DNA from: Thalia democratica
Lineage: Eukaryota
Length of the DNA stretch: 64,000 nucleotides
Reading direction: 5' to 3'
Assembly: GCA_965202585.1 (NCBI GenBank)
Contig: OZ241832.1
Location: forward strand, 55,366,001 to 55,430,000
The notes under the pieces are model-generated. The model saw only the letters and a list, made by a program, of their open reading frames with translations, was not told the origin of the DNA and did no database searches. The position numbers were made by a program, and so were the translations under genes. This document shows, piece by piece, positions 9,201 through 48,243 of the stretch. Within the stretch, counting starts at the first letter, position 1. Each line of letters opens with the position of its first letter.

Positions 9201-12200
9201 AGTCTAAAAACAGTCATGTGAATTAAAACTATCTACCACATAGTAAAAACAGGCACAGCTTTTTAGAAGAAAAGTTATTTATTTTTTTCTCAGATAAAAT
9301 ATAAACTTTAACTTTGAAGTATAAAACAGAAATAAATTTAAACTTTTAAAAACAAATTTTACTGCCGAGCTTAATGTTTATTTACAAAGCAATTATTAAC
9401 GTGTAATTATATATATAATTGAATAATTGAAAGTAGTAAATAGCACCTGTACTGTTTAGTCATAAAAGTATTTTGGTTAGAAGTTTATTGTGTTTTCTCA
9501 AAGGTATTAAACAATAGTTTTTAATTTTTAAAGCAAAGCATACATGTTACACAACCAAAAATTTTATTTTTTTTAGTTTTTGTTTAGTTACTAACAGTTT
9601 TTATATAACGTTTTTCAGTGAATTTTTATAACAACATAATTTTGTAACATTTAATTTTTTAATTAAACTGATGCTTAATAAAATATAATGAAGCAGATTT
9701 CTTTAATATAAACAACTTCATTGTTGGTTATGTTTGAAAAAGAAACAAAAAATATTTATATCTTTAAAAACTCATTTTTTAGCCTTCAAGTAGTATTGTA
9801 CAAAACTTATTCAAAATTTGCTTTAATATATTTAATACCACTGGTTAATAAAATAAATTAATTAAAGATAGTTGTTCAGAAAGTTTCAAAAGTTAAAAAT
9901 AAATTGAATTAAACTTTACATGGCGAGTAAAATGTTGGTCAAAACTGATAATAATCGAAAAAAAAGTATAAAATATGTTTAAAACTTTATTTAAAGCAAA
10001 CAATTTGTAAGAAAAAATTAGGAAGATTTATAAAATAGCTTGAAATTGTATACATTTATTCTAATTTAAACTATGTTCTTAACTAAAATGTTTAAAAAAA
10101 TCATGTTTTTTAGCTTTTAGTAGAAGCTTGTTTTAGCTAAATAAAAAATCATTATTTTAATACAGTAAGTAAAAAAATATTTTAAATAGCTGTAAGCGTA
10201 ATGAAGTAAGCTATTAATATTACGCATATATTTATCACAAGAATTTGCACAAATCTTGATTAAGCTGACAGCTAAACTTTAGTCGTAGTAGATACGTAAA
10301 TCAATCTTCTGAAGCACTTTAATTAAGTTATCTCTTAGTTCTGTAAACTCAGTTTTATTAATTTAATTTTTACTTAGCTCAAATTTAAGTCTAATAAAAA
10401 ATAGAGAACTTTTTATTTATTTACTATTAAAGTGAGTTAAGTTTAACTTTTTGCTCACAAATAACAGATTAAAGTCAGAATTTTGGTTATTTAAAACTAC
10501 TTAAAACAGTTAGACTTTTAATATGAACATTTAAACGATAACACAGTTTTAAGTTTAGCTGACAACTGGCTAAAAAAGTTTAATAGATAACTTTTTTAAC
10601 TTTTAAAATTAAAAAGAAAAAAAAAACTACAACCTGTCAGAGCTGTTAAAAAAATAATGTTTTTTGTATAAATAAATATCTTAGTCTTATTTTAAATTAT
10701 TCTATCAAAACAAATTTTTTGATTGTGAAAAGCTTATATATTTTTGATATAACATTTTTTAAACAGTTAAAACTTTTTGAAAAAAGTTTCAATCTTTTTT
10801 AAGATTAAAAACTAAATCTACTTTATTAATATTTATTTGCATATGGTACAAGAATGTTATCATAACAAAAAAAAGTTGATACAAAAATACAAATCTTTTC
10901 TATTACTGGAAATTAACAATTAACGTTTAAAATAAAATTGCAAAATATTTATTATATCCGTTTCTATCATTTGTTTAAAGTGTTTCCGAGTAAAATTTCT
11001 TTGGTTTATTATAGAATGGAATACTGGTTCCTTAAAGAAATACAAACTATTAATTTAAAAAATTTAAACAGCTGTTAATTTTTGACTTCTGTTTTTTTTA
11101 CTGTTGATCAGTACTGTTTGAAACAAAACTAAAAAACAAATAATGTAAAACTAAAAGTGATAAGATGTCTTAAGAGAAAATTTAAAGTAAACTACAGTGT
11201 TAAACTTATTGTTACTTTAATTTAAATTGTTATAAATTGATTAACCTAAAAAAATTACACAAATATTTTCGAACGTTTTTTGTGATTTAGTGCATAAAAA
11301 CATACAAAAAAAACCCTATTAGTAGCTAATTAATAAAACATTCTTTTGAAAGTACTAGTTTAAAGTTTGAAAAAATACATACAAAAATAATTTCCCTTAG
11401 AAAAATTATTTGGTTTGACTTTTTTTAAAAGGTATATGTATAAGCAATTTTAGGATATTTAGTGTCAAGTTATATTATAACTAAAGTGTACTGTTTCATT
11501 TGCAATTGTTAAACCAACACTTATCTTATTAAATATTTTAACAGCCAATTGTGTATTCAAAAGCATAAAGTTTCGTCATACAGACTCTTATAAACTTGGT
11601 TTAAACGTCTCTTTAATACAATTGGTTCGAAAAAAGTATCAATTTTAGTCTAAAGTTTATTATTAGAAGTCTTAGACTTCGTTTTGTTGAAACAAAAAAA
11701 AAATACTTACAATTTTTGTACATAGATGCCGATGAAAAACTTTTTAAGCACAAGTTTAATAAGCCTTTTAAAAATATTCAACATACCAAATCATAGTATA
11801 CTAAGTACTGTTTAATTCGAAAAAAAAACTGTAGAAAAATGTTTAATAACAATAAATTTATATGAGTTTTAAGGTTAAGTTGATTTTGATAAGGCATAAG
11901 AAATTAGATTACTCCAAACAAAGCAATCCAGTTCATATAATTTTACGACATTGTAAACGATGTGAATTCCCATGCTAAATATTACGAAACATACTGCGTA
12001 TCAAATAACTACGTGTTTTAATTGATTTCATGGTCAAGTTTTACATTTCAATCTATTTACATAATTTTTATTTTTTAATTGACAAAAAAAAATTCAACTT
12101 TTTTGTAGACGGGTTTTAGTGTGTAAGAAAATAAAACTCAAATTTAAACTGCAGGCTATGCAGAACCTGTTTAGATTCGGTTTTAATATCTGTTTGCATA

Positions 12201-14947
12201 GTTTTTACTATAGATTTAAATAACGTTGACTTTTAAAGGGTGTTTAACAACTACAAATTTCTTTCTTTTAGATATTTATATAGTGCAGTAAGAATATTAC
12301 TCAAAACTATTTATACGACAGTTTCTAATATATGATAATATTTTATATTAGTGTTTCCACTTAGTACTTTATTTAAAGGTGTAATCTAAAACACAACTAA
12401 TATTCTTGTATGCAGGCATATAAAAATAATGCAGAATAATTCTTAATATTTAAGTTTACAAAATACAAAACTTTTTATTTTCCAGAAATAAATATCACAA
12501 TCAATTATATCTTTCTTTTCGAGTCATAAGATGTTAACAATCGCTATATAAAAACAATTTGGAATATTATTTTATTTTAGGATCATATTTCTAGCATATA
12601 TAAAGTTTAATCGTTAATATATAGCAGAACATTGTTTATTAGTCTACACTTAACAGTTTCTATGACATCAGCCGATTCAACTACGTAATTTGTCAGTATT
12701 AATACGTTTTGCATTTTTAATCAATCTTTCAAGCAAATATTATTCAAGCAGTATACTTGACCGTATAATTAAAGTCTATTATTGACCATTTTATTTATTA
12801 TGTTTTGAATAACATACTAAGAGATTAAAAGAACTACCTTAAAATATTTTAAGTTGAAATTAACAAGCTTAAGTTTTTAAAGTTTATATCAATTAATTTT
12901 TAATAAGCCAGTAATAAAATGAGTATAAAACTATAAAGAAATTTTCGTAGCTATTTGTTTGTTGAAGTTTTTTAGTTATGTTACTATGAAAACATGTATC
13001 AAACGACGTATTCTGTATGGGTACTACGTATTTAGGTTGTTATGTATGTAATAAATTTACAACTAAAATACAACGAGTTCTTACGTATGTAATAAAAACA
13101 TGTTATGATATTTGGGTGCATCAACGTTTATAAAAAGTTCCATGAACTCCAAAAAAAAATTCAAAGAAATTTACAGTTAAATATTCATGTATTTTTTTAT
13201 ACCCATTTGTTACTAGTGTTATTCAAGCAAAAAAACACAGTTTTCAAAATAATTGTTAAATTAAGCTCTTACATATGTAAGTGAGTATAATTTTTCTAAT
13301 TACAAAACATGATCTACTGTCAGGTGTAAAAAAGCCTTTAATGTATATAACATTACTTTATAAACCTTTGTAAACAAAATAATTTCTAACAAACTATTTT
13401 AATATTCTAGTTTTCAGAAAAGTGTTATGAAAAGAAGTAAATTTCTTTAAGCTTATTAAAAATCACTTTTTTTAATGTACTTGGACATTAAATCTTACAT
13501 TTAATAAAAAGTATAGACTAGTACTTAGACGTTTTTCTGAGTAATTATTGTTCGTTTAATTAGATAAACAAGTACATATTTTTTGATGTCAAAAAAATTA
13601 CAGGTCATGAGTTACGTCTTCAATTAAAAAATACATAGAAGTTGCTGATTGTTAATAATCAAATTTCTGTGTATTGTTTGTTTTTAAATGTCAAATAAAG
13701 CATATGTTTTTTATTATAATGACATATTAATTTGAAACAGTATGTTCATATTTTAACTATGAATAAATTGTTTGTGAATATATAGAAAAAATATTTTTTC
13801 TAAAATCAAGCATTTATGCGTTATTACGTTTTAATTTTTTAATATTTTTAAAGTTTTATAAAGCTCATAACAACAATTTTTTTTTAATTTATAGAAAAAT
13901 GTTTAAAAAACGTTTTCTAAAATCAGTTTAAATATTTTAAATAGTTTATATTTACGCTTAAACTGCAAAAAATTACACCTCGTGAGATATTCCACTTGAA
14001 TATTTTGTTTAAAAATATTTCTAATGACAAAAAATTGCCTTCAGTTTACGTCTATATATAAAGTGATAAGTAAACGCATTTGTTTAAAAAGTAGCAACGA
14101 TAGTTGCTTTCAAGTTTCTGACTACGTCTATAACACTAAAAATAATACTGTACTGAATTATTTTATAACCATTAAGTTAAATATATCATTAACGTAGATA
14201 TTATTCATTAAATTTTAATTTCATATATAGTTTGTTTTATATAAATTTTGCTTGTAATAATTAAAATCTTTATATAATTTATTGATATCTAAAAGTACAA
14301 TTTGTAGAAGTTAAACACAACACAATAACAAAACTTTTAATTTTAATTAAATTATACTTTATCTGTTTTTTTTTAAGTATTGTGTTTATGATTAATATTA
14401 AAAATGAGTATTGTTTCAATTTTTGACTTTTTGTAACTAAATATGTAATATATTTTTAGTTTTTTATAACTCAATTCTGTCTTTTTTACAATTCCGAATA
14501 AGTTTTTATTTATTTGCTATCCTTTTAAAAGTTTCTATAAGAATTTTTAAAGCTTTTATTTGAATTTTTTAAAACTATTTATAGTATAGCAAGGTAATTT
14601 TTTAATATCAAATTATAGTTTTATGTTTAGTTAGTGCTTTCTTAATCATTAAAAAGTAAGTGAGTTTTTATTCTAAAATTATAGTTTCTCAATTACGTAT
14701 ATTACAAACAATAAGTTAATTATAGTTTTTTAAAAATACACTTCTAATAACAAATACAAATGTTTCTGAAAACACAACGGTCTATTTTGCAAGATTTAAA
14801 GAACTTAAATCAAGTTGTAACTTAATAAAAGCAATATTAGTAATTCGTTCTACTTTATATTAAACAGAGATAGAAAAAATACAGCATACTGTTTAAATTT
14901 AGCTAAAACCTTATAAAAAAAAAAACTATTAAAATCATCCAAGATTT

Positions 14948-17900
14948 TCAAGCCATCGATTGAAGTTCTGTTTTGTTTTCATCAATGTCATCATTTTCTT
15001 CGCACTGTAACAAAAAACTTGTAAAACATTAGAAATTATTTTAATAAAATGGTGTATTTTTGATTTACAAATTTTAAACAGATTAAGTTAAGTTGTCATA
15101 TTTAAAGATAATATATAGATTATTTTCGTTAGTGTTACGTCTGTTTCAATCGTTAAATTTAGTTTAAGCTTTTAGCTATATTTGCAACTGTTTACATTTT
15201 CAACAATAGGTTAAAACTAAATTTTCAGATATTTATTATACTACGGTATTTTAACAAATAAACTTTATAAATAAAAACAAAGTCAAGTAGTTAAAGTTTT
15301 GATTTTTGCATTACAAAAAATTGTTAAAATAACATTTCAATATTTTCCCTTAGTTGGAGCTATTGAGGTGATTAAATTAAATAGATAATTAGAATAAGAA
15401 TCCGAAAAAAAAAACAATAAACAGATGACTTAGTTTAGCGTAACACTTCGGCTGAACTTATCTTTTGCGTCTAACTCATTTTGTGTAAGCTTTTACTTGC
15501 AAAATTTGTTAACCATATTATAAAGTACTCGTTGTATATTTTTGCGAAATAAAACAAGTTGTGACTTTGTTACAAATCGATCTTTAATTGTTTTTTTTAT
15601 TTGTATTGAGTATTATTATGCAGTTTTTGCTAAAGTTTCATAGATACGCTAGCTTAATTTATTAACTTAAAGATGATGTATAAGGTTTAATTTCATTTGT
15701 TCATGTACAAACTCTAAAGCAATAACAGAAAGTCATAAATTTTTTCAGAGGCTTACAAGACATCCTTGTACAGGTCTATGAGTTGAGTTTAGTTAACAAA
15801 ATAAAAACGCTTGTTAAATCTGATGATAGAATTCTTATAAGGTCTACCAATAACATTATACTAATTAGTAACAGTACTACTATATTACACTCCCGTACTA
15901 CTACAGTTAAAACCCTGCTGCATCATTACTTCTACTTAATTCTACAAAAAAGAACCGTGTGAAGAAAAAAAACGCTTTATAATTTTTAAGATTTTTATTT
16001 GTTTAAATACTGAGCCTTTATATGAAATATAGCGGAAACTGGTCACAAGAAAGTAAGCTTTATAATATAAAATGCACCTTTGAATTGTACAGTTTTTTTT
16101 TTACAGTTCTTACCTAACTTCTGCATTTATTAGCATTTTATGCACGCAAATAAAAAAAAATCATTACTTTAGAAAATCCTATCAAACAGCTAAAACATAC
16201 GTACCTTCTAAATTTGAACCGAACTAATTGTATTGAAAACAAAGTTTAACAACCATAATAAAATATACTTACCAGAGAATAAAACCAAACATTTTAAAGT
16301 CGAAGTGCAATTTATTATTTAGACTTGTACTACTTAGGTTCGTACTTCCTGTTTAGTACGCACTTAATAGCTGTATTAAAAGTTCATTCTTAAGGAAAAG
16401 GTAAAATTATTAATTTCTGTTTTTCTCTAAACTGACACCTAACGGTAAAACAAATCAGTCTTAATTAAAGTTTATAAGAAAACGTTGACTTGTCAATTCT
16501 AAATGCAATTTACTTTTACGTATTCCGAACTATTTACCTTCCAAAACACTTGGTCTTCGTACAATTCGTCATGATTCATTCTGTCGAACAGCGGAAGTGA
16601 CATGATCAATCCGGTTATTGCTCCTGTCACTAGGGAGAGTGCTATGCAGACTACCAGCGAGTAGATTTGGAACGCGGCTTGATCCTCGCGTTTGATCAGT
16701 ATTTCGTAGCTGAAATTTAAACGTGACTAAATAACATGTTTCGTTTTTATGTTTAGCATCTTCCAAGTTAAACTTGAGTAAAAACTAAAAAAACACCAAA
16801 AAAAAATATTTAGTTAGTTTCAATGGTACTAAATCAGAAATAAACCTTAACTGTAAGTTTGTATAGCGTAAAATACATTTGTTAAATAAACTTCAACCTA
16901 TTTAACTTAATTCAACCTACCTATCTTTGTATTGTTCTTTAGTGGCGAGAGATGCGAGTATTGCACTGATGCAGGCTCCTAAGATTCCGGGCATCCCGTG
17001 AAGATTGTGCACTCCGCAAGTGTCGTGGAGACCTATCTTCTTCTGAAGAAGTGGCTGTAAAATAGTTACTGCTTAGTTGCTTTGAATTTTAAACTTATAG
17101 GTGTTTAGTAGCTACTAATGCAAAAAAAACAAAGCTTTTAATGCTGATGGGTGCTGAACATATGTTTTGATGTAACATTTGTTTTATGTAATCAAGTACA
17201 AATGTTATACTTTATAGTACTTAGACTTTTAAGTATGTTGCTTTAAGTATATCTTGAATGTTGAACAAAACAATTAAGATTTGTAATTACAGATTTGTAA
17301 TTGTAACACAAAAAAATTAACTTAAGATGTACCATGGTGCTTTATTTTTAACTTTTATCGCGTAATTTTTTGTTTAACTTGTACAAAATTATTTTATATT
17401 CTGTATCAACCATTGCAGAGAAAAACAGAACTTAATTAAAAATTATATTTAAAATAATCTACTTTTATGACTTATGTTTACTTTTGAGATCAAAAGCTAT
17501 AAGTAAAAAAATATCGTCTACAAAAGACAAAAATGTTCTACTTTTTTTGATATCAGCATTAGTTGCTTAATCGAACTACTTTTTATAAATGTAAAAACAA
17601 TTGAAAAGGTGTTTTATTATAAATAACTAATATATTTCTGTAGTAGTTATTAAAGTATATTACTATTGAACTTTGTAGTATATAGTTATTTGCCTTAACT
17701 AAAAGAGAATGCTCAATTTACTGAAATGTAAATAGGTTATTTAAATATTTTTTTGCAATTTAAATATTTCTATTCACGACCTTTTCAAAGCAATATAATT
17801 CGGTGGCAAAAAAATTGCGAACTTTTAAAGAAAATTAAAAATATTAACTTTGTACTAAAAACTTTTAATTTGTTTTATACACTTTAAAGAATTTTGAATT

Positions 17901-20900
17901 CTTTGCTTATTATTTTGAAATTATTAAGTTTATTTTATTTACCTGAACATAGTAGTATCCGAGCGTAGAAACAATACCGGCAACTGTCCCCATTATAAGT
18001 GCAATGTACGGTTGAACGAGGAAATCTGCGTTTGCCCCCATTATAACACCACCTGCCAGTGCTGCGTTTTGTACGTGCACCTGTAAGAAATTTGAAAGTA
18101 TTATAATCTTTTGAATGTTCTAGTTTGCAAAAAGTGTAGTTTACCAGAATGTAAAATTAAATTGGTCGATTTCGTTAGTTATACAATCTGCTATTTCAAT
18201 CACACCGCTTGCTAAGCCTGTTATACTTTTGTCAAAGCTCAAAACATTTTTATCATTTTATTAGGTATTGAAGTACAATGCAAATCTACTATTACTGGGT
18301 TTTGCAAACAGTTTTCAAATAGTTTATTTATGATGAATTTGGCGTGATTAATTTTATGGATTAAAAGAAAGCTTGACCTACTTGACCGCATTGATTACAC
18401 CATCTGATACTTAAAACCCGCCGCAAGGTTTTAATATTTTTTTTAATTTTTGCATAACACTAATTGCTAATACTTCAGTGAATAAAAAACCAATAACTTA
18501 ACAATGACTTACTCATTTTGATAAAAATTAAAATCATAACAAGACTCTTTAAAACGAAATAAAATGAGCTTTGAAAATTATTTATAAGTTTAAAACATTC
18601 AAACAATTATGTTTTTACAAAAAGTTAACAAACAGTTAATAAAACGGTTTGATATATAATTTTCAAGTGAAAATTGATTAGAGTTTTATTTAGATTATAA
18701 TGTTTGTAATTACTCACATTTTTATAAAGTAATAGTAGTACAATAGTTATTGATAAATATCATAAACTAATTCATTAGAAAGAAAACTTAACTTTTTTTT
18801 AACTATGATAACCATTTAAAATTCTATGTTTGATTTTTATTAATAATTATTTTTATTTGAAAAAGTTCTAGTGCTGCTGTTATATCTGTAGAACTACTTT
18901 ACAAACTGTTTTATGCTTTTTGCGTGCGAATATTTTTGTTTTTTATTATTAAACTATTATAAAACATAAACTAAAGAAAGAATTTTATATGTATGTTACT
19001 GAAAAAAAAAATTCACAGTTTTTAAGGTTTTAAACATTGACAATACCTTACTGTCGTGTAGCATATAAAAACATAAAGATATCTAGAGACTTATGTATCA
19101 AACTATTAATTTTCTAAGTTTAAGCGATATTAAATCAATCAAAAGTGTTAGAATATATTATTTAACGATTTATATGCTTTTAAAATTATAGTTTAATATA
19201 AGTTAAATGTACAATCAGAAAATTTTACGCAAGTGAGCAGATTAAATAGCATGAATGAAAATATAGTTTGTCGCAACAATTAATTGATAAGCGTTCCAAA
19301 ATTATTTTTTTTGTGGTTAAAAGAAGTATTAATTGGTTTTCCTAAGTTTCACAACAATTCAAGGGTACTATTTAGCTTACTAAACAAATAATTATTAGCT
19401 CTAATATGAATTCTTCTAATGAGCATTCTATCATTACTTTTGCTTTGAGTGTTTGCGTTAATTGTTTTTTTAACCTCATATTGTTTAACGGAGCTACGCT
19501 TTTAGCTTAACAAACAACAATTGCTTCAATTTTGATTAGCACAAAGTCATTTATCGGAATGTAATTGTGTTTTTTATTAATCAACTTATTATTGAAATAT
19601 TTTATTTTCTGTTATTGAAGTTTTTTAGCAGTATAAAACTAGCGTCACAATGCACTAAACATTATATTTGTTACAACACGTATCTTAATGTATGATATAA
19701 TTTTGCTTGTTTGTGTTTGTTATAAAAAATTATTTATTTTAAAAGTATTCAAGCAACCTTTTTTTTCAACAATTTAATTAGAAAATCAAACATTGAAATT
19801 ATTTATTAGACATTAACGGAAATCAAACAATTTTGCTTTGTAATAATTTGCACAGTTATAAATTTTAATTTAATATCGTTTGAAAATTTATTTATATTAA
19901 AAAGTATGTTAACTCTTTAAAATACCATATTCAACTTTTAGAAGGTGTTCAAGGTCTGAAAAAATTATGAATCAAACTCCTGAAAATGTAATACACCTAT
20001 ACTACTTATAACTATTTTCTCGAAATTTTCAGTGATGCAATGAAGCGCTCAGAAAAAATTAAAAAAAAAAGTCTTTTTTAAATATGAAAGATATATAACT
20101 ATTTTTTTTTCTACTAAATACCTAGTTGCACAAAATTAAGTACTAAAGATAACGTAAACGGGCTTAAATTGCATTAATAACGTGTGTACATAAGCTTTGT
20201 TCGTAAGATTAGTAATTACAACTAATCTATCAAACTTGTTGTACATATCAAGCACTGCTGTCAATGTAACGTTAGTTTGTTAAATAGATCATACATGTAA
20301 AGTATATGATACAATTCATTAATTAACAGCGCTCAACGTAGATAAATTACATGGTAATTACCGAAAGTATAACTAACCACTTTGTATTGCTTGTAATTTT
20401 TATAACTCTATCACCAAGGTATCATAGCTAACTAAGTTTAAGAAGTACAAACTAGAAATCCTGGCAATTATGACGTCACTAACCATGTCGAACTTGTTGT
20501 CTTTGTTCAAAACAGCCGACAGTGCAAAAGTGCTAGTAGTGCATGCTGACAAGGACATTATCGTGTTGATTATGGCCCTTTGTCTGTCCGCCCCGGTGGC
20601 AGGTCCCGCGTTGAAACTCGGCCAAAACAACCACAAAAACAGTGATCCTAGAATTTTATCATTAAAATTAAATGAATATGTTTAGGTTGCTACAAAAAAT
20701 TGTTTAAAAATACGTCTATAACTTTAAGCATATTTTGATCTAATGACATAAACTCTTCGAAACTTTAGTACAAAGTTATTGAGTTTTAAATTAAGTACTT
20801 TTTATTTTTTGCTTAATCCGTAAAGTATTCGATATCATAAAATAATAAAAACAAGTTAAGATAAAAGTTACATAGCTACAAGTTTAAATAAAAAAGAAGT

Positions 20901-33892: not shown

Positions 33893-33938
33893 AAGCCAAA
33901 CACTTTTACTGAAAGCTGGAAAGTTTGTAACTAGAAAA

Positions 33939-36900
33939 ATGACGTTAGTTTCAAACAACTGATTGTTTTAGCTTACGTATAATAAGCATATGGAATCATA
34001 CTTAATTATTTGTTATTTGATTTTTTAAGTTATACTGATTAACACATTTAGGTATAAACTATCTAGGAACACTTAAACAATTACTATAATTGTTATGTAA
34101 ACTAAAAAGTTAAACAAATAGAAAAAGTTTTAAGACTTTATAGAAACTGTTAGTAATTTAAGGACAGAAGATAATTGATTTAATTTTGCAACAGCTTCAA
34201 TTTTTTCCTAAGCTTGCTGTACTAACCTGAATCTCATACGGTTAACTTATTTAGAAACAAAAGGATTAAAAAAAAATTCAATGCCGAAATGGAATAATAC
34301 AAAAATAAAAAACCGCATGTCATTTACTTTTCACAGTTAAATTTCTTAAACAGTTAATTTATTAAAAGCGTTAGCGATATAGTTTTATGACAATAACTTA
34401 ACCAAAAGTACACATTGATTTTTTGGTCAGATTTTATAGTATTAATTAAAAAATAAAAATAAGTGATACTAATCGAAAATTTATTTAAAAGCACCATGCA
34501 CATTTCCAAATAACTTTCTTTTTCGCAAGTTGAATATGTTTTTTATACACAGCAACACCAGGGGATTAATATCGGGATTTTTATTTGCATCCCAAGTAGT
34601 CTTCATTATTTTGTTCGGGGTTTTCATGGAATACGATCCCTATCACACCGGACCCAAGAACAATACGTCACAAGAACAAAAGGATGCTTTAAAGAAAGAC
34701 GCGGAACTTTACCCTCGTACGTGTCACATTCATTTGTTTCAGTGACATAATTTGTGTAGTAATTTATAAGTTTCGTAAAGTTCAATATAGTTTAAGTTTT
34801 CAACTTAGTTAAAACTTAAGACTAATATAAACCGTTATGATGTTTTATTTTAGATTAAATAAGTATTAAAAACGATTTTCCGAAAATTTTAAACATATGC
34901 TCATGATCTTTATAAACTTTATATTAATTCACTTATAATTTAAAATAGGTGAAACAAGAATGTTGTTCAGTAAATCAAACTAATATACCGATTAACTTTT
35001 ACAGTTTTGTACAGCGCTGAAAACAGCTTTAAAATGATACATTATATACTTGACAATCAAATCAAGAAGTTTTCCTTTTTTAAATAAGATCATCTGCATC
35101 AATCTAAATCAGTTCAAAAAATAAAAGTTTTAATGACAGTATCTATATAAACATAAAACATTTTATGACGTCACACAGTGTTTCAAGACGTGCACGTGAT
35201 GATGCTGGTCGGTATCGGCTTCCTGTTGAGCTTCCTCAAACGTCACGGATACGGCTCGCTGGGTTTCGACTTTCTCCTCACCTGTTACGTCATACAGTGG
35301 TCGCTTCTCGTCAACGGATGGTTTGGTAACGTGGGGGGCGACGGCACAATTAAGCTTAGTTTGGAGAGGTTTTTAGTTTGTTTATATATAACAAAATTGA
35401 ATTAAGTTTTTTGTTAAAAAACACTAAGATCAATTTTGAGAGGTTTTTAAGTGGAAACTAAGTTGATATTTAGACTATTAGTTTTATGATCTGTAAGAAA
35501 AGCGCACTTTAGAGTGATGAACGATGGTAACTTTTTTGAAATTTTGTATGGTTTATGTAATTAAACGCGGTAAGAAATTTGTAACCAATTTTTAACTGTT
35601 TTTTAATTAGATAAACATAAAAGTTAAGTTTTTTATGATTAGTCGAATAACACAACAGCATAAATATGGTGTACGATGTCGTCTTAATTAACACGGTCTA
35701 TTTTTAATCATCATAACACGATTAAACGGGTAAAGAAATTTATAAAAAAAATTAAGTAGCTGTTTATTTAATTCATTAAAACTTAAACATTAACTTAATT
35801 TACTTAAAACATTAAAACTTAAATACCTCAGTTTCCTCCACGCCGATTTCGCGGTGGCTACCATCCTGATATCTTTTTGTTGTGTATTGGGTGTGGTCAG
35901 CCCCACGCAACTGGTTGTCATGGCAACTTTGGAGGTGGTGTTTTACAACATTGGTGTCTACGTTTGTCTTGAAGGATTGCAAGTTAGTATTTAAAAAATT
36001 ATTGTTTAATATATATGAAAAATATGTTTCAAAAGAAACAATAAAGCTTTTTTTTAAACTTGTTTTTATTAGTTTAAGTAGTTTTGATAATGCCCTTAGT
36101 AAGCTAGTAAATTAATGCCTGTAAAAACAGACATAACAGCTAATACACCAGGACAATTTAAGAAAATTAAATATTGTTTATATAAAGAATCAATGTAGCA
36201 TTAAAAAAATAAACTTTCTTAAAAAAAATACTGTAATAAATTCTTAACGAAGAACCACATAAATCACTAATCCAATATAATTAAATAGAATATCTAACGA
36301 GATTTATCAAAATTTAAAGCAGAACCACATTTTTATTAACTGAACATTTGTTTCTTATGATGCTTAACCAAACACTTTTGACAGATGCAAGGCTTAGTTT
36401 TATATTTACGTCGAACTTTTGAAAAGTTTTAAAGTTATACATAGAGGTTTTCTCCACCCTGTTTGAAAAGCTACAAAACTAAATACTAACATGTTTAAAA
36501 CTTTGTTTCATACTTATAACACATGACGATTATATCTATATAAATATTAATATTTAGCCGACTAGTGTAAAACTTTATTAGCTCACCGATGTAGGAGGCA
36601 CAATTGTCATTCACATATTCGCTTGCTACTTCGGACTCGCTGTTTCATTTGTGTTAAGCAAATTCGCTCCTTCTACCAATGAAAAGGAAGGATCTTCCTA
36701 CCAGTCTGATCTCTTCGCTATGATTGGTTTTTTTTTTCATTATGGGAAATGTTATGATTCACTTGTTTTTAAGCTAAATAATTCAAAATACCATGTAAAA
36801 ATGTAAATTAAATTAATAAAAAACAAATATAAAGACATGCAGGGTGCAATAGATGTAATATGCAGCTAAAGATACTATTATTCTGATTGTATTTGTACAA

Positions 36901-39900
36901 AACTTAAAAAATATAATTATAAACATCTTTACAAGCTGTATACTTCTTTTCAATTTAAACCTGTAGTTATGTAACTTTTATTTTAACTTGTTTTTTATAT
37001 TTTGTAATATCTAATATCTTACAGATCAAACAAAAAAATTAAAAAGTACTTAATTTAAAACTCAATAACTTTGTACTAAAGTTTCGAAGAGTTTACGCAT
37101 TAGATCAAAACTATGCTTAAATTTATAGACGTATTTTTAAACAATTTTTTGTAGCAAACTAAAACATATTTATTTAATTTTAATGATACAATTCTAGGAT
37201 CACTGTTTTTGTGGTTGTTTTGGCCGAGTTTCAACGCGGGACCTGCCACCGGGGCGGACAGACAAAGGGCCATAATCAACACGATAATGTCCTTGTCAGC
37301 ATGCACTACTAGCACTTTTGCACTGTCGGCTGTTTTGAACAAAGACAACAAGTTCGACATGGTTAGTGACGTCATAATTGCAGGATTTCTAGTTTTTAAT
37401 TCTTAAACTTAGTTAGCTATGTTACCTGGTTGGTAGAGTTATAAAAACTACAAGCAATACAAAGTGGTTAGTTATATTTTCGGTAATTACCATGTAATTT
37501 ATCTACGTTGAGCGCTATGAATAAAATTAATTGTATCATATACTTTACATGTATGATATATTTAACAAACTAACGTCACGTTGACAGCAGTGCTTGATAT
37601 GTACAACAAGTTTGATAGATTAGTTGTAATTACTAATCTTACTAACAAAGCTTATGTACACATGTTATTAGTGCAATTTAAGCCCGTTTACTTTATCTTC
37701 AGTACTTAGTTTTATGCAATTAGGTAGTTGGTAGGAAAAAAACAATTAGTTATATATATATATTTCATATTTAAAAGAAAGGTTTTTTATGTTTCTTTTT
37801 TCTGAGCGCTTAATTGCATCACTGAAAACTTCGAGAAAATAGTTAAAAATATATTTTCGAAGTTTGTGTTTTACATTTTCAGGAGTTTAATTTATCATTT
37901 TGTCATAGTAAACTAGATCTTGAACATCGTTTAAAAGTTCTGTGGGGTATTTTTAAAAGTTTATAACACCTAACATACTTTTCAATATAAATAAATATTC
38001 AAATGATATTAATTTAAAATTTACACTTGGTGAAAATTACAACAAAGCAAAATTGTTTGATTTCCGTTGAAGTCTAATCAATAATTTTTATGTTTGATTT
38101 TTTAATAAATTGTTGAAAAAAAATGTTGCTTGAATACTTTTAAAATAAATAACATTAGTATAAGAAACACAAGCAAGCATTATTATATAATAGATAAGAT
38201 ACGTATTGTCATAAACTTGATGTTTAATGCATCGTGATGCTAGTTTTATACTGCTAAAAAATTTCAATAAAAGAAAATGAAATATTTCAATATAAAGTTG
38301 TTTTATAAAAAACACACTTACATTCCGATAAATGACTTTGTGCTAATCAAAATTGTAGCAATTGTTGTTTGTTAAGCTAAAGGCGTAGCTCCGTTAAAAA
38401 ATATGACGTTCAAAAATCAATTAACGCGAATGTTCAAAGCAAAAGTAATAACAGAATGGTCATTAAAAGAATTCATAATAGAGTTAAGCACTCTTTGTTT
38501 TGTAAGCTAAAAACGTAGTACACTTGAATTCTTATGAAATTAAAAAAAAAAACTTCTTTTAATCACAAGAAAAAGTAATTTTAGAACGCTTATTTATTAA
38601 TTGTAGCGACAAACTTTATTTTCATACACGCTATTTTATTTGATCACTTGCATAGAATTTTTCTGTTGCACATTTAAATAATATTCAACTATAATCCTTT
38701 AAAAGCGTATAAGTCGTTAAATTAGATATTCTAAAAATTTTGATTATTCGAATATCGCTTAAACTTAGAAAATTAATAGTTTGATACATAAGTTTCCGGA
38801 TAATTTTAAGTTTTTTATATACTACACAACAGTAAGGTAATTTCAATGTTAAAAACTTTAAAAACTGTGAAAAAAAACTTTGAGTAAAATACATATATAA
38901 ATCGTTTTTTAATTTATATTTTATAGTAGTTTAATAATAAAAAACAAAAGTATTCGCACGTAAAAAGCATAAAACAGTTTGTAAAGTAGTTCGACAGATA
39001 TGACAACAGCACTAGAACTTTTTCAAATAAAAATAGTTGTTAATAAAAATCAAACATAGAATTTTAAATGGTTATCATAAATAAAAAAAAGTTAAGTTTT
39101 CTTTTAATGAATTAGTTTATATTTTTCATCTATAACTAATGTACTACTATTACTTAATAAAAATGTGAGTAATTGCAAACTATATAATCTAAAAAAAACT
39201 CTAATCAATTTTCACTTGAAAATTGTATATAAAACCGTTTTATTAACTGTTTTTTAATTATTTATAAAAAAATTTTTTTTTGGATATTTTAAACTTATAA
39301 CTAATCTTTCAAAGCTCATTTTATTTCGTTTTAAAGAGTCTTGATATGATTTTTTTTTCTTTATCAAAATGAGTAAGTCATTGTTATTTTATTGGTTTTT
39401 TATTCACTGAAGTCTTACAATTAGTGTTATGCAAAAATTTAAAAAAATATTAAAACCTTGCGGCGGGTTTTAAGTAGCAGATTGTGTAATCAATGCGGTC
39501 AAGTAGGTCAAGCTTTCTTTTAATCCATAAAAACAATCACGCCAAATTCATCATAAATAAACTATTTAAAAAACTGTTTGCAAAACCCAGTATTAGCACA
39601 TGTTTATCGTACTTTAACACCTAATAAAATGATAAAAATGTTTTTACCTTTGAAAAATTTATAACAGGCTTAGCAAGCGGTGTGATTGAAATAGCAGATT
39701 GTATAATTAACGAAGTCGATTAATTTAATTTTACATTCTTCTAAACTACTCTTTTTGCAAACTAGAACATTCAAAAGATTATGTTACATTCAAACTTCTC
39801 ACAGGTGCACGTACAAAACGCAGCACTGGCAGGTGGTGTTATAATGGGGGCAAACGCAGATTTCCTCGTTCAACCGTACATTGCACTTATAATGGGGGCA

Positions 39901-42900
39901 GTTGCCGGTATTGTTTCTACGCTCGGATACTACTATGTTCAGGTAAATAAAATAAACTTAATAATTTCAAAATAATAAGCAAAGAATTCAATATTCTTTA
40001 AAGTGTATAAAACAAACTAAAAGTTTTTAATACAAAGTTAATATTTTTAATTTTCTTGAAAAGTTGGCAATTTTTTTGCCACCGAATTATATTGCTTTGA
40101 AAAGTTCGTGAATAGAAATATTTAAATTGCAAAAAAATATTTAAATAACCTCTTTACATTCCAGTAAATGAATGAGAAGAGCAAATCTTTGAGCATTCTT
40201 TTTTAGTTAAGGCAAATAACTATATACTACAAAGTTCAATAGTAATATACTTTAATAACTACTACAAAAATGTATTAGTTATTTATAATAAATCACCTTT
40301 TAATTTGTTTTTACATTTATAAAAAGTATTTCGATTAAGCAACTAATGCTGATATCAAAAAAAAAAAGTAGAACATTTTTGTCTTTTGTAGACGATATTT
40401 TTTTACTTATAGCTTTTGATCTCAAAAATAAACATAAGTCATAGAAGTAGATTACTTTAAATATAATTTTTAATTAAGTTCTGTTTTTCTCTGCAATGGT
40501 TGATACAGAATATAAAATAATTTTGTACAAGTTAAACAAAAAACTACGCGATAAAAGTTAAAAATAAAGCACCATGGTACATCTAAAGTTATTTTTTTTG
40601 TGTTACAATTACAAAATCTGTAATTACAAATCTTAGTTGTTTTGTTCAACATTTAAAATATCCTTAAAGCAACATACTTAAAAGTCTAAGTACTATAAAG
40701 TATAACATTTGTACTTGATTACATAAAACAAATGTTACATCAAAACATATGTTCAGCACCCATCAGCATTAAAAGCTTTGTTTTTTTTTGCATTAGTAGC
40801 TACTAAACACCTATAAGTTTAAGATTCAAAGTAAATAAGCAGTGACTACTTTACAGCCACTTCTTCAGAAGAAGATAGGTCTCCACGACACTTGCGGAGT
40901 GCACAATCTTCACGGGATGCCCGGAATCTTAGGAGCCTGCATCAGTGCAATACTCGCATCTCTCGCCACTAAAGAACAATACAAAGATAGGTAGGTTGAA
41001 TTAAGTTAAATAGGTTGAAGTTTATTTAACAAATGTATTTTACGCTATACAAACTTACAGTTAAGGTTTATTTCTGATTTAGTACCATTGAAACTAACTA
41101 AATATTTTTTTTTGGTGTTTTTTTAGTTTTTACTCAAGTTTAACTTGGAAGATGCTAAACATAAAAACGAAACATGTTATTTGGTCACGTTTAAATTTCA
41201 GCTACGAAATACTGATCAAACGCGAGGATCAAGCCGCGTTCCAAATCTACTCGCTGGTAGTCTGCATAGCACTCTCCCTAGTGACAGGAGCAATAACCGG
41301 ATTGATCATGTCACTTCCGCTGTTCGACAGAATGAATCATGACGAATTGTACGAAGACCAAGTGTTTTGGAAGGTAAATAGTTCGGAATACGTAAAAGTA
41401 AATTGCATTTAGAATTGACATGTTAACGTTTTCTTTTAAACTTTAATTAAGACTGATTTGTTTTACCGTTAGGTGTCAGTTTAGAGAAAAACAGAAATTA
41501 ATAATTTTACCTTTACCTTAAGAATGAACTTTTAATACAGCTAATAAGTGCGTACTAGACAGGAAGTACGAACCTAAGTAGTACAAGTCTAAATAATAAA
41601 TTGCACTTCGACTTTAAAATGTTTGGTTTTATTCTCTGGTAAGTATATTTTATTATGATTTTTAAACTTTTTTTTCAATACAATTAGTTCGGTTCAAATT
41701 TAGAAGTTACGTATGTTTTAGCTGTTTGATAGGAATTTCTAAAGTAATGATTTTTTTTTATTTGCGTACATAAAATGCTAATAAATGCAGAAGTTAGGTA
41801 AGAACTGTAAAAAAAACTGTACAATTCAAAGGTGCATTTTATATTATAAAGCTTACTTTCTTGTGACCAGTTTCCGCTATATTTCATATAAAGGCTCAGT
41901 ATTTAAACAAATAAAAATCTTAAAAATTATAAAGCGTTTTTTTCTTCACACGGTTCTTTTTTGTAGAATTAAGTAGAAGTAATGATGCAGCAGGGTTTTC
42001 AACTGTAGTAGTACGGGAGTGTAATATAGTAGTACTGTTACTAATTAGTATAATGTTATTGGTAGACCTTATAAGAATTCTATCATCAGATTTAACAAGC
42101 GTTTTTATTTTGTTAACTAAACTGAACTCATAGACCTGTACAAGGATGTCTTGTAAGCCTCTGAAAAAATTTATGACTTTCTGTTATTGCTTTAGAGTTT
42201 TTACATGAACAAATGAAATTAAACCTTATACATCATCTTTAAGTTAATAAATTAAGCTAGCGTATCTATAAAACTTTAGCAAAAATTGCATAATAATACT
42301 CAATATAAATAAAAAAAAACAGTTAAAGATCGATTTGTAACAAAGTCACAACTTGTTTTATTTCGCAAAAATATACAACGAGTACTTTTTAATATGGTTA
42401 ACAAATTTTGCAAGTAAAAGCTTACACAAAATGAGTTAGACGCATAAGATAAGTTCAGCCGAAGTGTTACGCTAAACTAAGTCATCTGTTTATTGTTTTT
42501 TTTTCGGATTCTTATTCAAATTATCTATTTAATTTAATCACCTCAATAGCTCCAACTAACGGTAAATCTTGAAATTATGTTTTAAGTATCACAATGCAAA
42601 AATCAAAAGTTTATCGACTTGACTTTGTTTTTATTTATAAAGTTTTTTTGTTAAAATACCGTAGTATAATAAATATCTGAAAATTTAGTTTTAATCTATC
42701 GTTGAAAATGTAAACAGTTGCAAATATAGCAAAAAGCTTAAACTAAATTTAATGATTGAAACAGACGTAACACTAACGAAAATAATCTATATTTTATCTT
42801 TAAATATGACAACTTAACTTAATCTGTTTAAAATTTGTAAATCAAAAATACACAAATTTATTAAAATAATTTCTAATATTTTACAAGTTTTTTGTTACAG

Positions 42901-42957
42901 TGCGAAGAAAATGATGACATTGATGAAAACAAAACAGAACTTCAATCGATGGCTTGA
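33939..42957 (+). CDS. Rh50: Rh-family ammonium transporter (Rh50 glycoprotein, RhAG/RhBG/RhCG-like, SLC42), copy R; join 33939..33943, 34553..34716, 35179..35368, 35832..35982, 36582..36726, 37198..37361, 39805..39942, 40857..40990, 41202..41373, 42901..42957; 439 aa
   Basis: Same exon structure and motifs as copy L. Twin His (H181 in VIHIF, H338 in NLHG), Phe gate (F126 in ADF, F222 in LFLW), N-glycosylation sequons NNT/NTS in loop 1, acidic tail [18 protein letters not shown]. Confidence 0.92.
41541..41638 (+). other. Candidate stop-containing cassette exon in last intron of Rh copy R
   Basis: TTTTAATACAG acceptor, then CTA ATA AGT GCG TAC TAG, ending at CTG|GTAAGT. An alternative upstream acceptor (CCGTTAG, 41472) would give GTG TCA GTT TAG. 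Confidence 0.4.
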
Positions 42958-45900
42958 AAATCTTGGATGATTTTAATTTTTTTTTTTATAAGGTTTTAGC
43001 TAAATTTAAACAGTATGCTGTATTTTGTCTATCTCTGTTTAATATAAAGTAGAACGAATTACTAATATTTCTTTTATTAAGTTACAACTTACTTTAAATT
43101 CTTTTAATCTTGCAAAATAGACCGTTGTGTTTTCAGAAACATTTTTATTTGTTATTAAAAGTGTATTTTTAAAAAACTATAATTAACTTATTGTTTCTAA
43201 TATACGTAATTGAGAAACTATAATTTTAGAATAAAAACTCACTTACTTTTTAATGATTAAGAAAGCACTAACTAAACATAAAATTATAATTTGATATTAA
43301 AAAATTACCTTGCTATACTATAAATAGTTTTGAAAAATTCAAATAAAAACTTTAAAAATTCTTATAGAAACTTTTAAAAGGATAGCAAATAAATAAAAAC
43401 TTATTCGGAATTGTAATAAAGACGGAATTAAGTTATAACAAACTAAAAATATATTACACATTTAGTTACAAAAAGTCAAAAATTGAAACAATACTCATTT
43501 TTAATATTAATCATAAACACAATACTTAAAAAAAAAAACAGTTAAAGTATAATTTAATTAAAATTAAAAGTTTTGTTGTTGTGTTGTGTTTAACTTCTAC
43601 AAATTTTTCTTTTAGATATCAATGAATTATATAAAGATTTTAATTATTACAAGCAAAATTTATATAAAACAAACTATATATGAAATTAAAATTTAATGAG
43701 TAATATCTACGTTAAGGATATATTTAACTTAATGGTTATAAAATAATTTAGTACAGTATTATTTTTAGTTTTATAGACGTAGTCTGAAACTTGAAAGCAA
43801 CTATCGTTGTTACTTTTTAAACAAATGCTTTTACTTATCACTTTATATATAGACGTAAACTTAAGGCAATTTTTTGTCATTAGAAATATTTTTAAACAAA
43901 ATACTCAAGTGGAATTTCTCACGAGGTGGATTTTTTTTTAGTTTAAGCGTAAATATAAACTATTTAAAATGTTTAAACTGGTTTTAGAAAACGTTTTTTA
44001 AACTTTTTTTCTATAAATTAAAAAAAAATTGTTGTTATGAGCTTTTTAAAACTTTAAAAATATTAAAAATTAAAACATAATAACGCATAAATGCTTGAAT
44101 TTATAAAAAATAATATTTTTTCTATATATTCAAAAACAATTATTTATAGTTAAAATATGAACATACTGTTTCAAATTGATATGTCATTATAATAAAAAAC
44201 ATATGCTTTATTTGACATTTAAAAACAAACAATACACAGAAATTTGATTATTAACAATCAGCAACTTCTAGGTATTTTTTAATTGACGACGTAACTCATG
44301 ACCTGTAAACTTTTTGACATCAAAAAATATGTACTTGTTTATCTAATTAAACGAACAATAATTACTCAGAAAAACGTCTAAGTACTAGTCTATACTTTTT
44401 ATTAAATATAAAATTAAATGCCTAAGTACATTATAAAAATTGATTTTTAATAAGCTTAAAGAAATTTACTTCTTTTCATAACACTTTTCTGAAAACTAGA
44501 ATATCATAATAGTTTGTTAGAAATTATTTTGCTTACAAAGGTTTTTAACGTAATGTTATTTACAATGGTTCATTAAAGGTTTTTCACACCTGACAGTAGA
44601 TCATGTATTGTACTTGAACAAAAAGTTATAGTCACATACAATGTAATCAATTAAATAAACAATTATTTTAAAAATGTATTTTTTCTACTTGAATAACACT
44701 TGAAATAAATTGGTATAAAAAATATATAAATACCTAATTGTAAATTTCATTTGAATTTTTTTCTGCAATTCATGGAAATTTTTATAAACTTTGATGCACC
44801 CAAATATCATAAACATGTTTTTATTACATACGTAAGAACTCGTTGTTTTTTAGTTGTAAATTTATTTATACAGAATACGACGTTTGACACATGTTTTCAT
44901 AGTAATATAACTTAAAAACATCAATAAACAAATAGCTATTAAAAGTTCTTTATAGTTCTTTACTAATTCTATTACTAGCTTATTAAAAAATAATTGATAA
45001 AAACTTTAAAAACTTAAGCTTGTTAATTTCAACTTAAAATATTTCAAGGTAGTTCTCTTAATCTCTTAGTATGTTATTTAAAACATAATAAATAAAATGG
45101 TCAATAATAAACTTTAATTATACGGTCAAGTAACTGCTTGAATAATTTTTGCTTGAGAGATTGATTAAAAAGGCAAAACGTATTAATACTGACAAATTAC
45201 GTAGTTGAATCGGCTGATGTAAACTGATAGAAACTGTGTAGACTAATATACCATGTTCTGCTATAGATTAACGATTAAACTTTATATATGCTCTAAATAT
45301 GATCCTAGAATAAAATAATATTCCAAATTGTTTTTAAATAAAGAATGTAAACATCTTATCATTTGAAAAGAGAGATATAATTGGTTTTGATATTTATCTG
45401 TGGAAAATAAAAAGTATTGTGTTTTGTAAACTTAAATATTAAGAATTATTATGCACTATTTTTATATGCCTGCATAAAAAATATTACTTGTGTTTTAAAT
45501 TACACCTTTAAAAAAAAATACTAAGTGGAAACACTAATATAAAATATTATCATATATTAGAAACTGTCGTATAAATAGTTTTGAGTAATATTCTTACTGC
45601 ACTATATAAATAACTAACAAAAAGAAATTTGTAGTTGTTAAACACCCTTTAAAAGTCTACGTTATTTAAGTCTATTGTAAAAACTATGCAAACAGATATT
45701 AAAACCGAATCCAAACAGGTTCTGCATAGCTTGCAGTTTAAATTTGAGTTTATTTTCTTACACACTAAAACACGTCTTTTAAAAGGTTTAAGAAATATTA
45801 TTTTTTGGCAACTAAAAAATAAAAATTAAGTAAATAGCCTGAAATGTAAAACTCGACCATGAAATCAATTAAAACACGTATTTATTTTATACGCAGTACG

Positions 45901-46589
45901 TTTCGTAACACTTTGTATAGGAATTCACGTCGTTTACAATGTCGTAAAATTGTATGAACTGGATTGCATTGTTTGGAGTAATCTAATTTCTTATGCTTTA
46001 TCAAAATCAACTTAACCTTAAACTCATATTATTTTATTTTTACGGGAATTTTTTACAGTTTTCAATTGGAGTTAAGTAGTACTTAGTTAACAATAATTTA
46101 GTATGTTGAATATTTTTTTATAAAGACTTATCAAACTTGTGTTTAAAAAGTTTATCATCGGCATCTATGTACAAAAATTGTAAGTAGTTTAAAGTTTTTT
46201 TTTGTTTTAACAAAACGAAGTCTAAGACTTCTGATAATAAACTTTAGACTAAAATTGATACTTTTTTTCTAACAATTGTATTAAAGAGACGTTTAAACCA
46301 AGTTTTTAAGAGTCTGTATGACGAAATTCTATGCTTTTGAATACACAATTGGCTGTTAAAATATTTAATAAGATAAGTGTAGGTTTAACAATTGCAACTG
46401 AAGCAGTACACTTTTGTTATGATATAACTTGACACTAAATATCCTAAAATTGCTTATACAAATACATTTTTATAAAAGTCAAACAAAATAATTTTTTAAG
46501 GGAAATTATTGTTGTATGTATTTTTTCAAATTTTAAACTAGTACTTTCAAAGTTTAGTTTGATTTATTTAAGCTAATCGTAAATTATAT

Positions 46590-48240: not shown

Positions 48241-48243
48241 TTG

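Follow-up and report, generated by a model that had tools for sequence, protein, structure and literature searches.

The window, i.e., the whole 64,000-nt stretch of DNA analysed here, contains a palindrome in which two long arms lie in inverted orientation around a unique spacer. Each arm carries a complete Rh-family gene, and one arm additionally carries a hAT transposon. The features are listed below by their positions in the window.

11345-29206: left arm, 17,862 nt, or 14,552 nt net of a 3,310-nt gap; inverted homology to 46551-32358
29207-32357: spacer, 3,151 nt, unique, 23% GC
32358-46551: right arm, 14,194 nt; inverted homology to the left arm
14948-24295, minus strand: left Rh gene, 10 exons, 439 aa, ATG at 24295
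Left Rh exons 1 to 5, minus strand: E1 24295-24291, E2 23516-23353, E3 22637-22448, E4 22011-21861, E5 21257-21113
Left Rh exons 6 to 10, minus strand: E6 20647-20484, E7 18080-17943, E8 17054-16921, E9 16709-16538, E10 15004-14948
33939-42957, plus strand: right Rh gene, 10 exons, 439 aa, ATG at 33939
Right Rh exons 1 to 5, plus strand: E1 33939-33943, E2 34553-34716, E3 35179-35368, E4 35832-35982, E5 36582-36726
Right Rh exons 6 to 10, plus strand: E6 37198-37361, E7 39805-39942, E8 40857-40990, E9 41202-41373, E10 42901-42957
24917-28218: non-autonomous hAT element, left arm only, with perfect 14-bp terminal inverted repeats (TIRs) CAGGGTTTCCCAAA
31782-32411: tandem duplication, 344 bp, 1.8 copies, ~96% identical, straddling the spacer/right-arm junction
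32014-32067: fossil arm start within copy 1 of the tandem duplication, a copy of the arm's first 54 nt; junction at 32013|32014
46576-47085, minus strand: decayed LINE-type reverse-transcriptase remnant, an open reading frame with a FADD motif (RVT_1 E 0.055, sub-threshold)

Comparing the window with itself, which an earlier note on this DNA had proposed doing as a dot-plot, recovered the inverted collinear arms. Twenty-seven inverted pairs, all collinear, lead inward from 11392/46505 to 29205/32359, and self-BLAST aligned 11323-22991 with 46575-34826 over 11,844 columns (91.8% identity including gaps), followed by three more collinear blocks. In the base-level alignment, homology begins abruptly at the outer edge (~11345|46551) and ends just as abruptly at the inner edge (29206|32358). 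The 3,310-nt gap in the left arm is the hAT element plus one copy of its target site. The measured lengths bear out the dimensions given in the earlier note (~35 kb in all, arms of ~14.2-14.6 kb, a spacer of 3.15 kb), and the locus has the makeup of a large palindrome: arms of at least 9 kb, a unique spacer, and one gene per arm. Neither a gene nor an RNA family could be recognised in the spacer (29207-32357). The arms differ by ~100 indels. At the right end of the spacer, the tandem duplication and the fossil arm start within it mean that the spacer/right-arm junction is present twice, in copies that are ~4% diverged.

Outside the arms, homology stops abruptly and all four sides are unrelated, over >11 kb outside and ~3 kb inside. 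This part of the earlier description stood, whereas the names it gave to the flanks did not gain significant support: the GNAT match in the left flank is sub-threshold (E 0.016), as is that of the reverse-transcriptase fragment on the right, which is cut off ~25 nt from the outer edge of the right arm.

The two Rh genes are arranged head-to-head, with 9.6 kb between their ATGs (hAT element included). The coding sequence (CDS) is 1,320 nt in both copies, the reading frames are open, and GT-AG is intact at every splice site in both (18 of 18 in the left copy). Thus, the claim of two intact 10-exon genes is confirmed in splice sites, frames, and orientation. The duplicated DNA extends ~1.6 kb upstream and ~3.6 kb downstream of each gene; each copy has its own duplicated upstream DNA, interrupted in the left copy by the hAT element, and the earlier idea that the copies share upstream regulatory DNA is not supported. 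The CDSs differ at seven sites, the same count as first reported: four replacements (V25I, M27V, Y32D, and A305T, with I25, V27, D32, and T305 diagnostic of the left copy) and three synonymous changes. Five of the seven fall within 23 nt, and the other two are spread across the remaining 1,297 nt. Two marine metatranscriptomes contain merely 6-8% of the 31-mers from the 3' region.

The encoded proteins belong to the Rh branch of the ammonium transporter family. The Ammonium_transp domain (PF00909) was found above cut-off on exon 6 (E 4.4e-11) and exon 7 (E 1.8e-8), with a weak match on exon 3. Residues 12-438/439 align to 487-aa Rh homologues with 42% identity (E 1e-130); this resemblance, collinear over the full length, is to the Rh50 type and not to Amt/MEP. 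Insect Rh50 and Rh type B are the closest homologues that carry a name, and in the PDB the top matches are human RhCG, RhAG, and bacterial Rh50. The conserved channel residues noted earlier are present in both copies: the motifs ADF, D-x-G-G...I-H, FWPSFN, and NLHG align to the corresponding segments of human RhCG and RhAG. From the RhCG structure, we take the Phe of ADF, the first His (I-H), the second Phe (FWPSFN), and the second His (NLHG) to be pore-lining. All four amino acid differences between the copies lie away from these motifs. Both copies encode full-length Rh50-like proteins, which are probably functional channels.

Divergence between the arms is strikingly uneven. Identity is ~94% overall and ranges from 86 to 100% by block and from 86 to 99% by 500-column window, and it does not stay above 99% along the whole arm, the level expected of sex-chromosome palindromes. 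Non-coding mismatch is 6.25% overall and heterogeneous along the arms (chi-square 353, 39 df, P 3e-52). Divergence classes of 2.3% and 10.6% were resolved by a two-state HMM; the low class makes up 59% of the arm and includes every exon plus several kb of non-coding DNA. Within the same Rh gene, intron divergence spans 0.5% to 11%; among the low-divergence stretches are intron 9 (1.5 kb, 2.9%), intron 8 (0.5%), intron 2 (1.5%), and the interval 13499-15288. The high-divergence blocks are not alignment noise, because they match the low blocks in substitution spectrum, complexity, and GC. Synonymous divergence (dS 0.010) is far below that of the pooled introns (0.067, P 1.9e-6) and compatible with the low-divergence class (P 0.09). 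The arms thus combine a mosaic beyond uniform divergence with silent-site identity far above that of non-coding DNA, the pattern seen in Amy- and Hsp70-type gene pairs.

The reading that we favour, with a probability of about 0.7, is that the segment was duplicated in inverted orientation long ago and that gene conversion from arm to arm has since made parts of it alike again, patch by patch. The duplication copied the whole Rh gene together with its upstream and downstream DNA; the most diverged blocks, which differ by ~10-11%, show that it is old. Intrachromosomal conversion between the inverted arms would then have re-homogenised patches that add up to ~60% of the arm and comprise all exons as well as several kb of intronic and flanking DNA, now ~2% different, while the large introns and the 2 kb at the outer end would have escaped. 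The 344-bp tandem duplication over the spacer/right-arm junction and the insertion of the hAT element ahead of the left gene would be later events, the latter recent. The earlier description of the locus as self-homogenising therefore holds in part: the mosaic of blocks and the near-identical exons, silent sites included, agree with it, but arms that are only ~94% identical do not.

A bolder version of this reading, tentative and in our view rather doubtful, is a palindrome that maintains itself. Intrachromatid conversion would keep the ten exon pairs in step, silent sites included, with diverged introns acting as barriers and exons as self-perpetuating islands of identity, and the locus would be one case of an unusually strong genome-wide tendency of the species both to form and to keep large inverted gene duplications.

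Alternatively, the duplication may be real and its two copies may have drifted apart without interruption after one event, with exons held by purifying selection and strong selection on codon usage, and with low-divergence non-coding blocks representing constrained regulatory or UTR sequence or DNA of low mutation rate. Several observations lean this way: identical runs track the exons and overshoot them by only ~10-50 nt, with a mismatch rate that has already risen to 5-6% between 11 and 30 nt outside the exon; the GC3 of the Rh CDS is 0.54 in a genome of 25% GC, suggesting that synonymous sites are not neutral; and a signal of GC-biased conversion is absent from the low-divergence blocks (GC 0.225 vs 0.239). 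However, AT-rich intronic and flanking sequence totalling several kb differs by 0.5-3% next to introns of the same gene at 10-11%, the two classes are alike in composition, complexity, and substitution spectrum, an 8-fold synonymous deficit is large for codon selection alone, and the CDS differences are clustered. On this evidence, we regard divergence without conversion as unlikely.

Less probable still is that the palindrome is real and only one copy is active, the left Rh copy being silenced or diverging in regulation through the hAT element, with no doubling of dosage. The insertion lies ~620 nt upstream of the left ATG and is private to that copy, whose introns 1 and 2 also carry private tandem duplications. 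The hAT element occupies one arm only: the TIRs are accompanied by an 8-bp target site duplication (TSD) ATATAGGC at 24909-24916 and 28219-28226, and the right arm retains the empty site with a single ATATAGGC. The match to a hAT dimerisation domain is weak (E 0.013). The family is very high-copy, because the word depth of the element ends exceeds 100,000 in three runs. The insertion looks recent, because TIRs and TSD are perfect, and any silencing would be young. Moreover, the left reading frame and all its splice sites are intact, dN/dS between the copies is 0.39 (a value from only seven differences), and the two copies share a 167-nt stretch around exon 1 without a single difference.

The duplication could also be questioned at the level of the assembly, for which contigs from three public runs (X1, X2, and X3, from two samples) provide independent data. 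A 2,636-nt contig spanning 29176-31811 is present in all three and is continued by contigs at 31791-31913 and then 31884-32044 (X1, X2) or 31871-32044 (X3), a chain that joins the left-arm end, the spacer, and the inverted arm end. The last contigs of the chain bridge the fossil junction at 32013|32014. Contig breaks coincide exactly with 31-mers repeated inside the window; no single contig covers the spacer plus both arms, and no independent contig from X1-X3 crosses 32257-32359, a hole that arises because the 31-mers there are repeated. In X2, the common arm-end node has a depth of 190.8 vs 107.2 for the spacer, ~1.8x, a rough, contig-based figure. Checked in this way, as proposed earlier, arm contigs have 1.2-1.8x the depth of the spacer and not 0.5x, roughly, as contigs collapse similar arms. 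Samples S1 and S2 contain diagnostic letters of the left type as well as of the right type; contigs of X3 and of X1/X2 show left-arm letters at right-arm diagnostic sites, maybe through bubble collapse by the assembler. An assembly artefact, be it alleles joined in inverted orientation or distant paralogues chimerically joined in the repeat-rich right end of the spacer, would suit an organism that appears polymorphic, arm divergence of 2-11% that fits invertebrate haplotypes, and the hole at 32257-32359, but it is very unlikely, since alleles would have common flanks, fold-back chimeras would have near-identical arms and no spacer rather than ~100 indels and private insertions, a tandemly duplicated, diverged junction cannot come from an assembler, junction-bearing contigs recur in all three runs, the arm-end depth (if rough) is raised, and the repeats account for the hole. 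The earlier preference for a real duplication over a haplotype misjoin is upheld.

Loci of this type are already well known, and the Rh pair adds another example. Mirror-image adjacent paralogues under ectopic gene conversion include Amy-p/Amy-d and Hsp70Aa/Ab of Drosophila (PMC3924832). As in those pairs, coding sequences here are near-identical, silent sites included, while non-coding DNA diverges. Unlike the Amy and Hsp70 genes, which are short with few or no introns, the Rh gene has 10 exons over ~9 kb, and its identity takes the form of islands round each exon plus kb-scale non-coding blocks. Concerted evolution of Amy and Hsp70 was demonstrated by orthologues and shared polymorphism, whereas in the Rh pair it is a proposal from the comparison of the arms. 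Adjacent inverted duplicates with a short unique spacer and inferred conversion are also found among the hsp16 modules of C. elegans and other neighbouring inverted paralogues (PMC3966223, a review which adds that introns may halt conversion when they diverge fast). The C. elegans cases are much smaller than the Rh palindrome, with tiny introns and only a few hundred bp of spacer.

Within the same family, human RHD and RHCE encode erythroid Rh30 proteins that lack the channel histidines, unlike the Rh50-like genes here, whose pore motifs are intact. In PMC4824203, which cites Suto 2000 and Wagner & Flegel 2000, RHD and RHCE are adjacent Rh paralogues of opposite orientation with gene conversion. 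Both loci consist of neighbouring inverted Rh-family paralogues, with conversion shown in human and suggested here; the human genes lie tail-to-tail, ~30 kb apart, with TMEM50A between them, whereas those described here are head-to-head across a gene-free 3.15-kb spacer. The human duplication is ape-specific, and the present one is an independent event in a marine invertebrate.

Palindromes of primate sex chromosomes (human Y P1-P8 and X palindromes) are said to be described in Skaletsky 2003 and Rozen 2003. Their arms are >99.9% identical throughout and often carry testis-expressed gene families. Compared with them, the Rh locus, at ~94% and mosaic, has the look of a decaying, partly converted palindrome. 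Autosomal palindromic segmental duplications, with inverted arms >9 kb around a unique spacer, are described in PMC13688818. The Rh locus resembles both sex-chromosome and autosomal palindromes in arm length, unique spacer, a gene per arm, and the opportunity for conversion.

The diverged duplicate of the junction offers an argument from sequence alone that separates a real palindrome from a misjoin. For ammonia physiology, the locus shows only that two nearly identical Rh channel genes lie at one place; the doubling of dosage suggested in the earlier note is hypothetical. If the conversion reading is true, the pair would be a clean multi-exon example of inverted-paralogue conversion confined to exon identity islands, and one that arose independently in the gene family of the medically important human RHD and RHCE.

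The window, 75% A+T and free of N, holds a palindrome in which two inverted arms, each with one Rh gene, flank a 3,151-nt spacer. An inverted-repeat search returned 27 collinear arm pairs, running from 11392/46505 inward to 29205/32359, and self-BLAST gave a single inverted alignment of 11323–22991 with 46575–34826 together with three more collinear blocks. By base-level alignment, both the outer edge (~11345|46551) and the inner edge (29206|32358) are sharp: the final 163 nt are identical between the arms, and the sequence past the inner edge is wholly unrelated. The left arm measures 14,552 nt net of an insertion, and the right arm 14,194 nt. Thus, inverted-repeat search, self-BLAST, base-level alignment, and exon models bear out the coordinates, arm and spacer sizes, and gene models of an earlier note, made from the sequence alone. 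Weak BLAST matches (58–61%) that would extend the arms into the spacer were rejected, as base-level alignment resolved them into a tandem-repeat copy and AT-rich noise. A dispersed repeat of ~400 nt (~60% identity) occurs at 1033–1442 in the left flank and once per arm, at 13711–14093 and 43811–44195. Rfam yielded no family at the gathering score in the whole window, and none at E ≤ 1 in 46500–49500, so no hammerhead at 48244–48829 either. Hammerheads of the minimal dimer type may score too low to register.

Features of the palindrome and its right flank
11345–29206: left arm
14948–24295, minus strand: left Rh gene
~24917–28218: hAT element interrupting the left copy by ~3.3 kb (terminal inverted repeats, target duplication, empty site)
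29207–32357: spacer
32358–46551: right arm
33939–42957, plus strand: right Rh gene, head-to-head with the left
50094–50327, minus strand: phospholipase A2-like ORF (PF00068, E 4e-6, sub-threshold at 27.6 bits vs. a cut-off of 32.1)
52669–53282, plus strand: Kelch-repeat exons (Kelch_1, E 1e-5 and 2e-5)
55473–56149: lower-identity direct-repeat array, far right flank
59564–61491: direct-repeat array, far right flank (units of ~270–800 nt, 73–98% identity)

Rh-like exon ORFs lie on the minus strand in the left arm and on the plus strand in the right. Exons were anchored on full-length homologues (exhaustive search with exon 6), and frame-consistent GT-AG junctions were then demanded. The final model has ten exons in each arm, its 1,320-nt coding sequence specifying 439 aa, with 18 of 18 splice sites present in each copy. 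A nine-exon, 433-aa model was dropped once a conserved tenth exon was found, marked by a good GTAAAT donor right behind “...FWK” and a strong acceptor 1.5 kb downstream. This exon encodes 18 residues, identical in both copies; read-through to the in-frame stop at 41410–41412 is possibly a minor isoform. Exon 1 consists only of the ATG and two bases (ATGAC|gt), within a 167-nt block identical between the arms.

The two proteins align with full-length Rh proteins over residues 12–438 (42% identity, E 1e-130), the nearest named relatives being insect Rh50 and Rh type B. The ADF, D-x-G-G...I-H, FWPSFN, and NLHG motifs align with human RhCG and RhAG; in published Rh structures, these motifs supply the phenylalanines and the aspartate of the pore as well as its twin histidines. 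Seven differences (CDS nt 72, 73, 79, 84, 94, 351, and 913) separate the coding sequences, namely V25I, M27V, Y32D, A305T, and three silent changes. The first five cluster in a 23-nt stretch of exon 2, where the N-terminal region is poorly conserved, and the site of A305T corresponds to a variable position within a helix; exon 2 found no match among solved structures. The Rh gene of the closest public relative, carried by Logan contigs L001/L002 (4,750 nt), is compact (~2.8 kb, short introns, GC 37%), and its protein identity is 40–70% by segment, highest in exon 6. Its base composition, compactness, and amino-acid identity of 55–70% make it too distant to serve as an outgroup or as copy-number evidence; it shows how much larger introns are in the T. 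democratica genome.

The divergence between the arms forms a mosaic, with identity per 500-column window ranging from 86% to 99%. Across exons 3–10, 2 of 1,151 nt are different, against 0.5% to 11% in the intervening introns. At synonymous sites the divergence is 0.010 (3 changes in 297 sites) vs. 0.067 for pooled introns; a coding sequence diverging at the latter rate would be expected to show 20 silent differences (P(≤3) = 1.9e-6). Non-coding columns alone are strongly heterogeneous (chi-square 353, 39 df, P 3e-52). Under a two-state model, the arm resolves into low-divergence blocks (2.3%; 59% of aligned columns) and high-divergence blocks (10.6%). All exons lie inside the former, which also include kilobase-scale non-coding DNA, i.e., introns 9, 8, and 2, 1.8 kb at 13499–15288, and the whole 5′ flank to the spacer; the latter take in the outermost 2.1 kb of the arm along with intron 6 and portions of introns 1, 3, 4, and 5, examples being 11345–13498 (vs. 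46551–44408) and 18085–20448 (vs. 39800–37396). Substitutions are ~4 times and indels ~2 times as frequent in the high blocks as in the low ones; both classes are alike in GC, compressibility, homopolymer content, and substitution spectrum. Greater age, not mis-alignment, thus accounts for the high blocks.

Judging from this pattern, gene conversion between the arms would be the probable source of the mosaic (we put its probability at roughly 0.65–0.7). Diverged introns can block conversion, as reviewed (PMC3966223). The main alternative, which we consider unlikely, is that no conversion took place and that purifying selection, together with selection on codon usage, kept the exons alike. The identical runs do track exons closely, GC3 is 0.54, and the low blocks carry no signature of GC-biased conversion, all of which suit selection; however, it leaves unexplained a 20-fold spread in divergence among ordinary AT-rich introns of one gene. 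The self-homogenisation proposed in the earlier note is partly supported: the arms are only ~94% identical overall, but the mosaic is consistent with patchy conversion, and the exons are near-identical. The near-perfect arm identity that defines sex-chromosome-type palindromes is absent.

The hAT element in the left copy has perfect 14-bp terminal inverted repeats, with no other occurrence within the window, an 8-bp target duplication (ATATAGGC), and a weak match to the hAT dimerisation domain. Given these hallmarks and the intact empty site held by the right arm, the insertion postdates the duplication. Word depth at its terminus (27900–28293) is ~108,000–289,000, vs. ~50–190 for spacer and arm contigs; with ends above 100,000, the hAT family must be very abundant. 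Separately, a fragment at 32037–32233, within a tandem-repeat unit, has a word depth of ~47,000–57,000; both it and the hAT terminus belong to extremely abundant repeat families of the genome. The left copy alone also carries tandem duplications in intron 2 (22809–23248, ~258 nt extra) and intron 1 (23797–24219, ~163 nt extra), which are private changes after the duplication.

The physical reality of the structure was examined using independent data: assembler contigs from three public runs of two samples, labelled as two organisms. The spacer in these runs differs from the window by 0.2–0.6%. A 2,636-nt contig spans 29176–31811, with exactly its first 31 nt in the left arm, and chains onward via 31791–31913 and 31884–32044. 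A 31-mer multiplicity map places every contig break at a point where words turn repeated within the window, and 32257–32359 is poorly covered for the same reason. The spacer/right-arm junction has no exact match in public metagenome contigs, a result uninformative either way. A 344-bp tandem duplication (31782–32411) straddles this junction, and its first copy therefore contains a second junction (32013|32014) together with the arm's initial 54 nt. Divergence between the two copies now stands at ~4%, and contigs ending at 32044 bridge the junction copy in all three runs. As an assembler misjoin cannot carry a diverged duplicate, this is the strongest argument for a real structure.

In one run (X2), depth is 190.8 at the node common to both arm ends vs. 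107.2 in the spacer. In all three runs, arm contigs have 1.2–1.8 times the spacer depth (contig means, the assembler collapsing similar arms), about the expectation if words specific to one arm are counted a single time and those common to both are counted twice. None of the contigs runs through the spacer into both arms. At diagnostic sites, both samples show left-type as well as right-type letters. Alleles would have common flanks, and here homology stops abruptly on four sides, the outer flanks (>11 kb each) and the two spacer halves being unrelated. An assembly artefact is thus very improbable, contradicted by these flanks, by the local sequence recurring in three runs, by the diverged junction duplicate, and by arm depth that is not the half predicted for alleles, so that the earlier preference for a real duplication over a haplotype misjoin holds.

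On the outer side of the right arm, a decayed reverse-transcriptase remnant is cut off ~25 nt from the arm boundary, which would fit a rearrangement breakpoint inside a repeat. Nothing recognisable of the missing LINE part was found on the far side of the arms or in the spacer, nor any microhomology. The left-flank “GNAT gene” of the earlier note (5811–6263, plus strand) reduces to an ORF with a sub-threshold match to Acetyltransf_1/7 (E 0.016), and the neighbouring ORF (5090–5494) has no Pfam match. On the right, the ORF at 50094–50327 is likely an exon of a secreted PLA2-like gene, and the Kelch exons indicate that this flank has ordinary genes, not repeat alone.

The simplest account would be a four-stage history: an old inverted duplication, at a neutral distance of at least 10%; patchy arm-to-arm conversion, with every exon within a converted tract and the latest exchanges at ~1–3% divergence; the tandem duplication across the junction, whose copies have reached ~4% divergence; and, most recently, the hAT insertion. 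Dosage doubling of Rh is not supported; the only expression signal is 6–8% of sampled words, from the 3′ exon/UTR stretch, in two marine metatranscriptomes. Shared upstream regulation, also suggested, finds no backing: ~1.6 kb of duplicated upstream DNA accompanies each gene separately, split on the left by the hAT element ~620 nt upstream of the ATG, and no gene, RNA family, or conserved element could be recognised in the spacer.

Similar arrangements are known. Drosophila Amy and Hsp70 and C. elegans hsp16 are adjacent inverted paralogues under ectopic conversion, as appears to be the case here, and human RHD/RHCE are oppositely oriented Rh-family genes with conversion (PMC4824203). A fitting label for the locus is a partly converted palindrome in decay. 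In summary, the Rh palindrome of T. democratica is real, but it is another case of the known inverted-paralogue-pair type.
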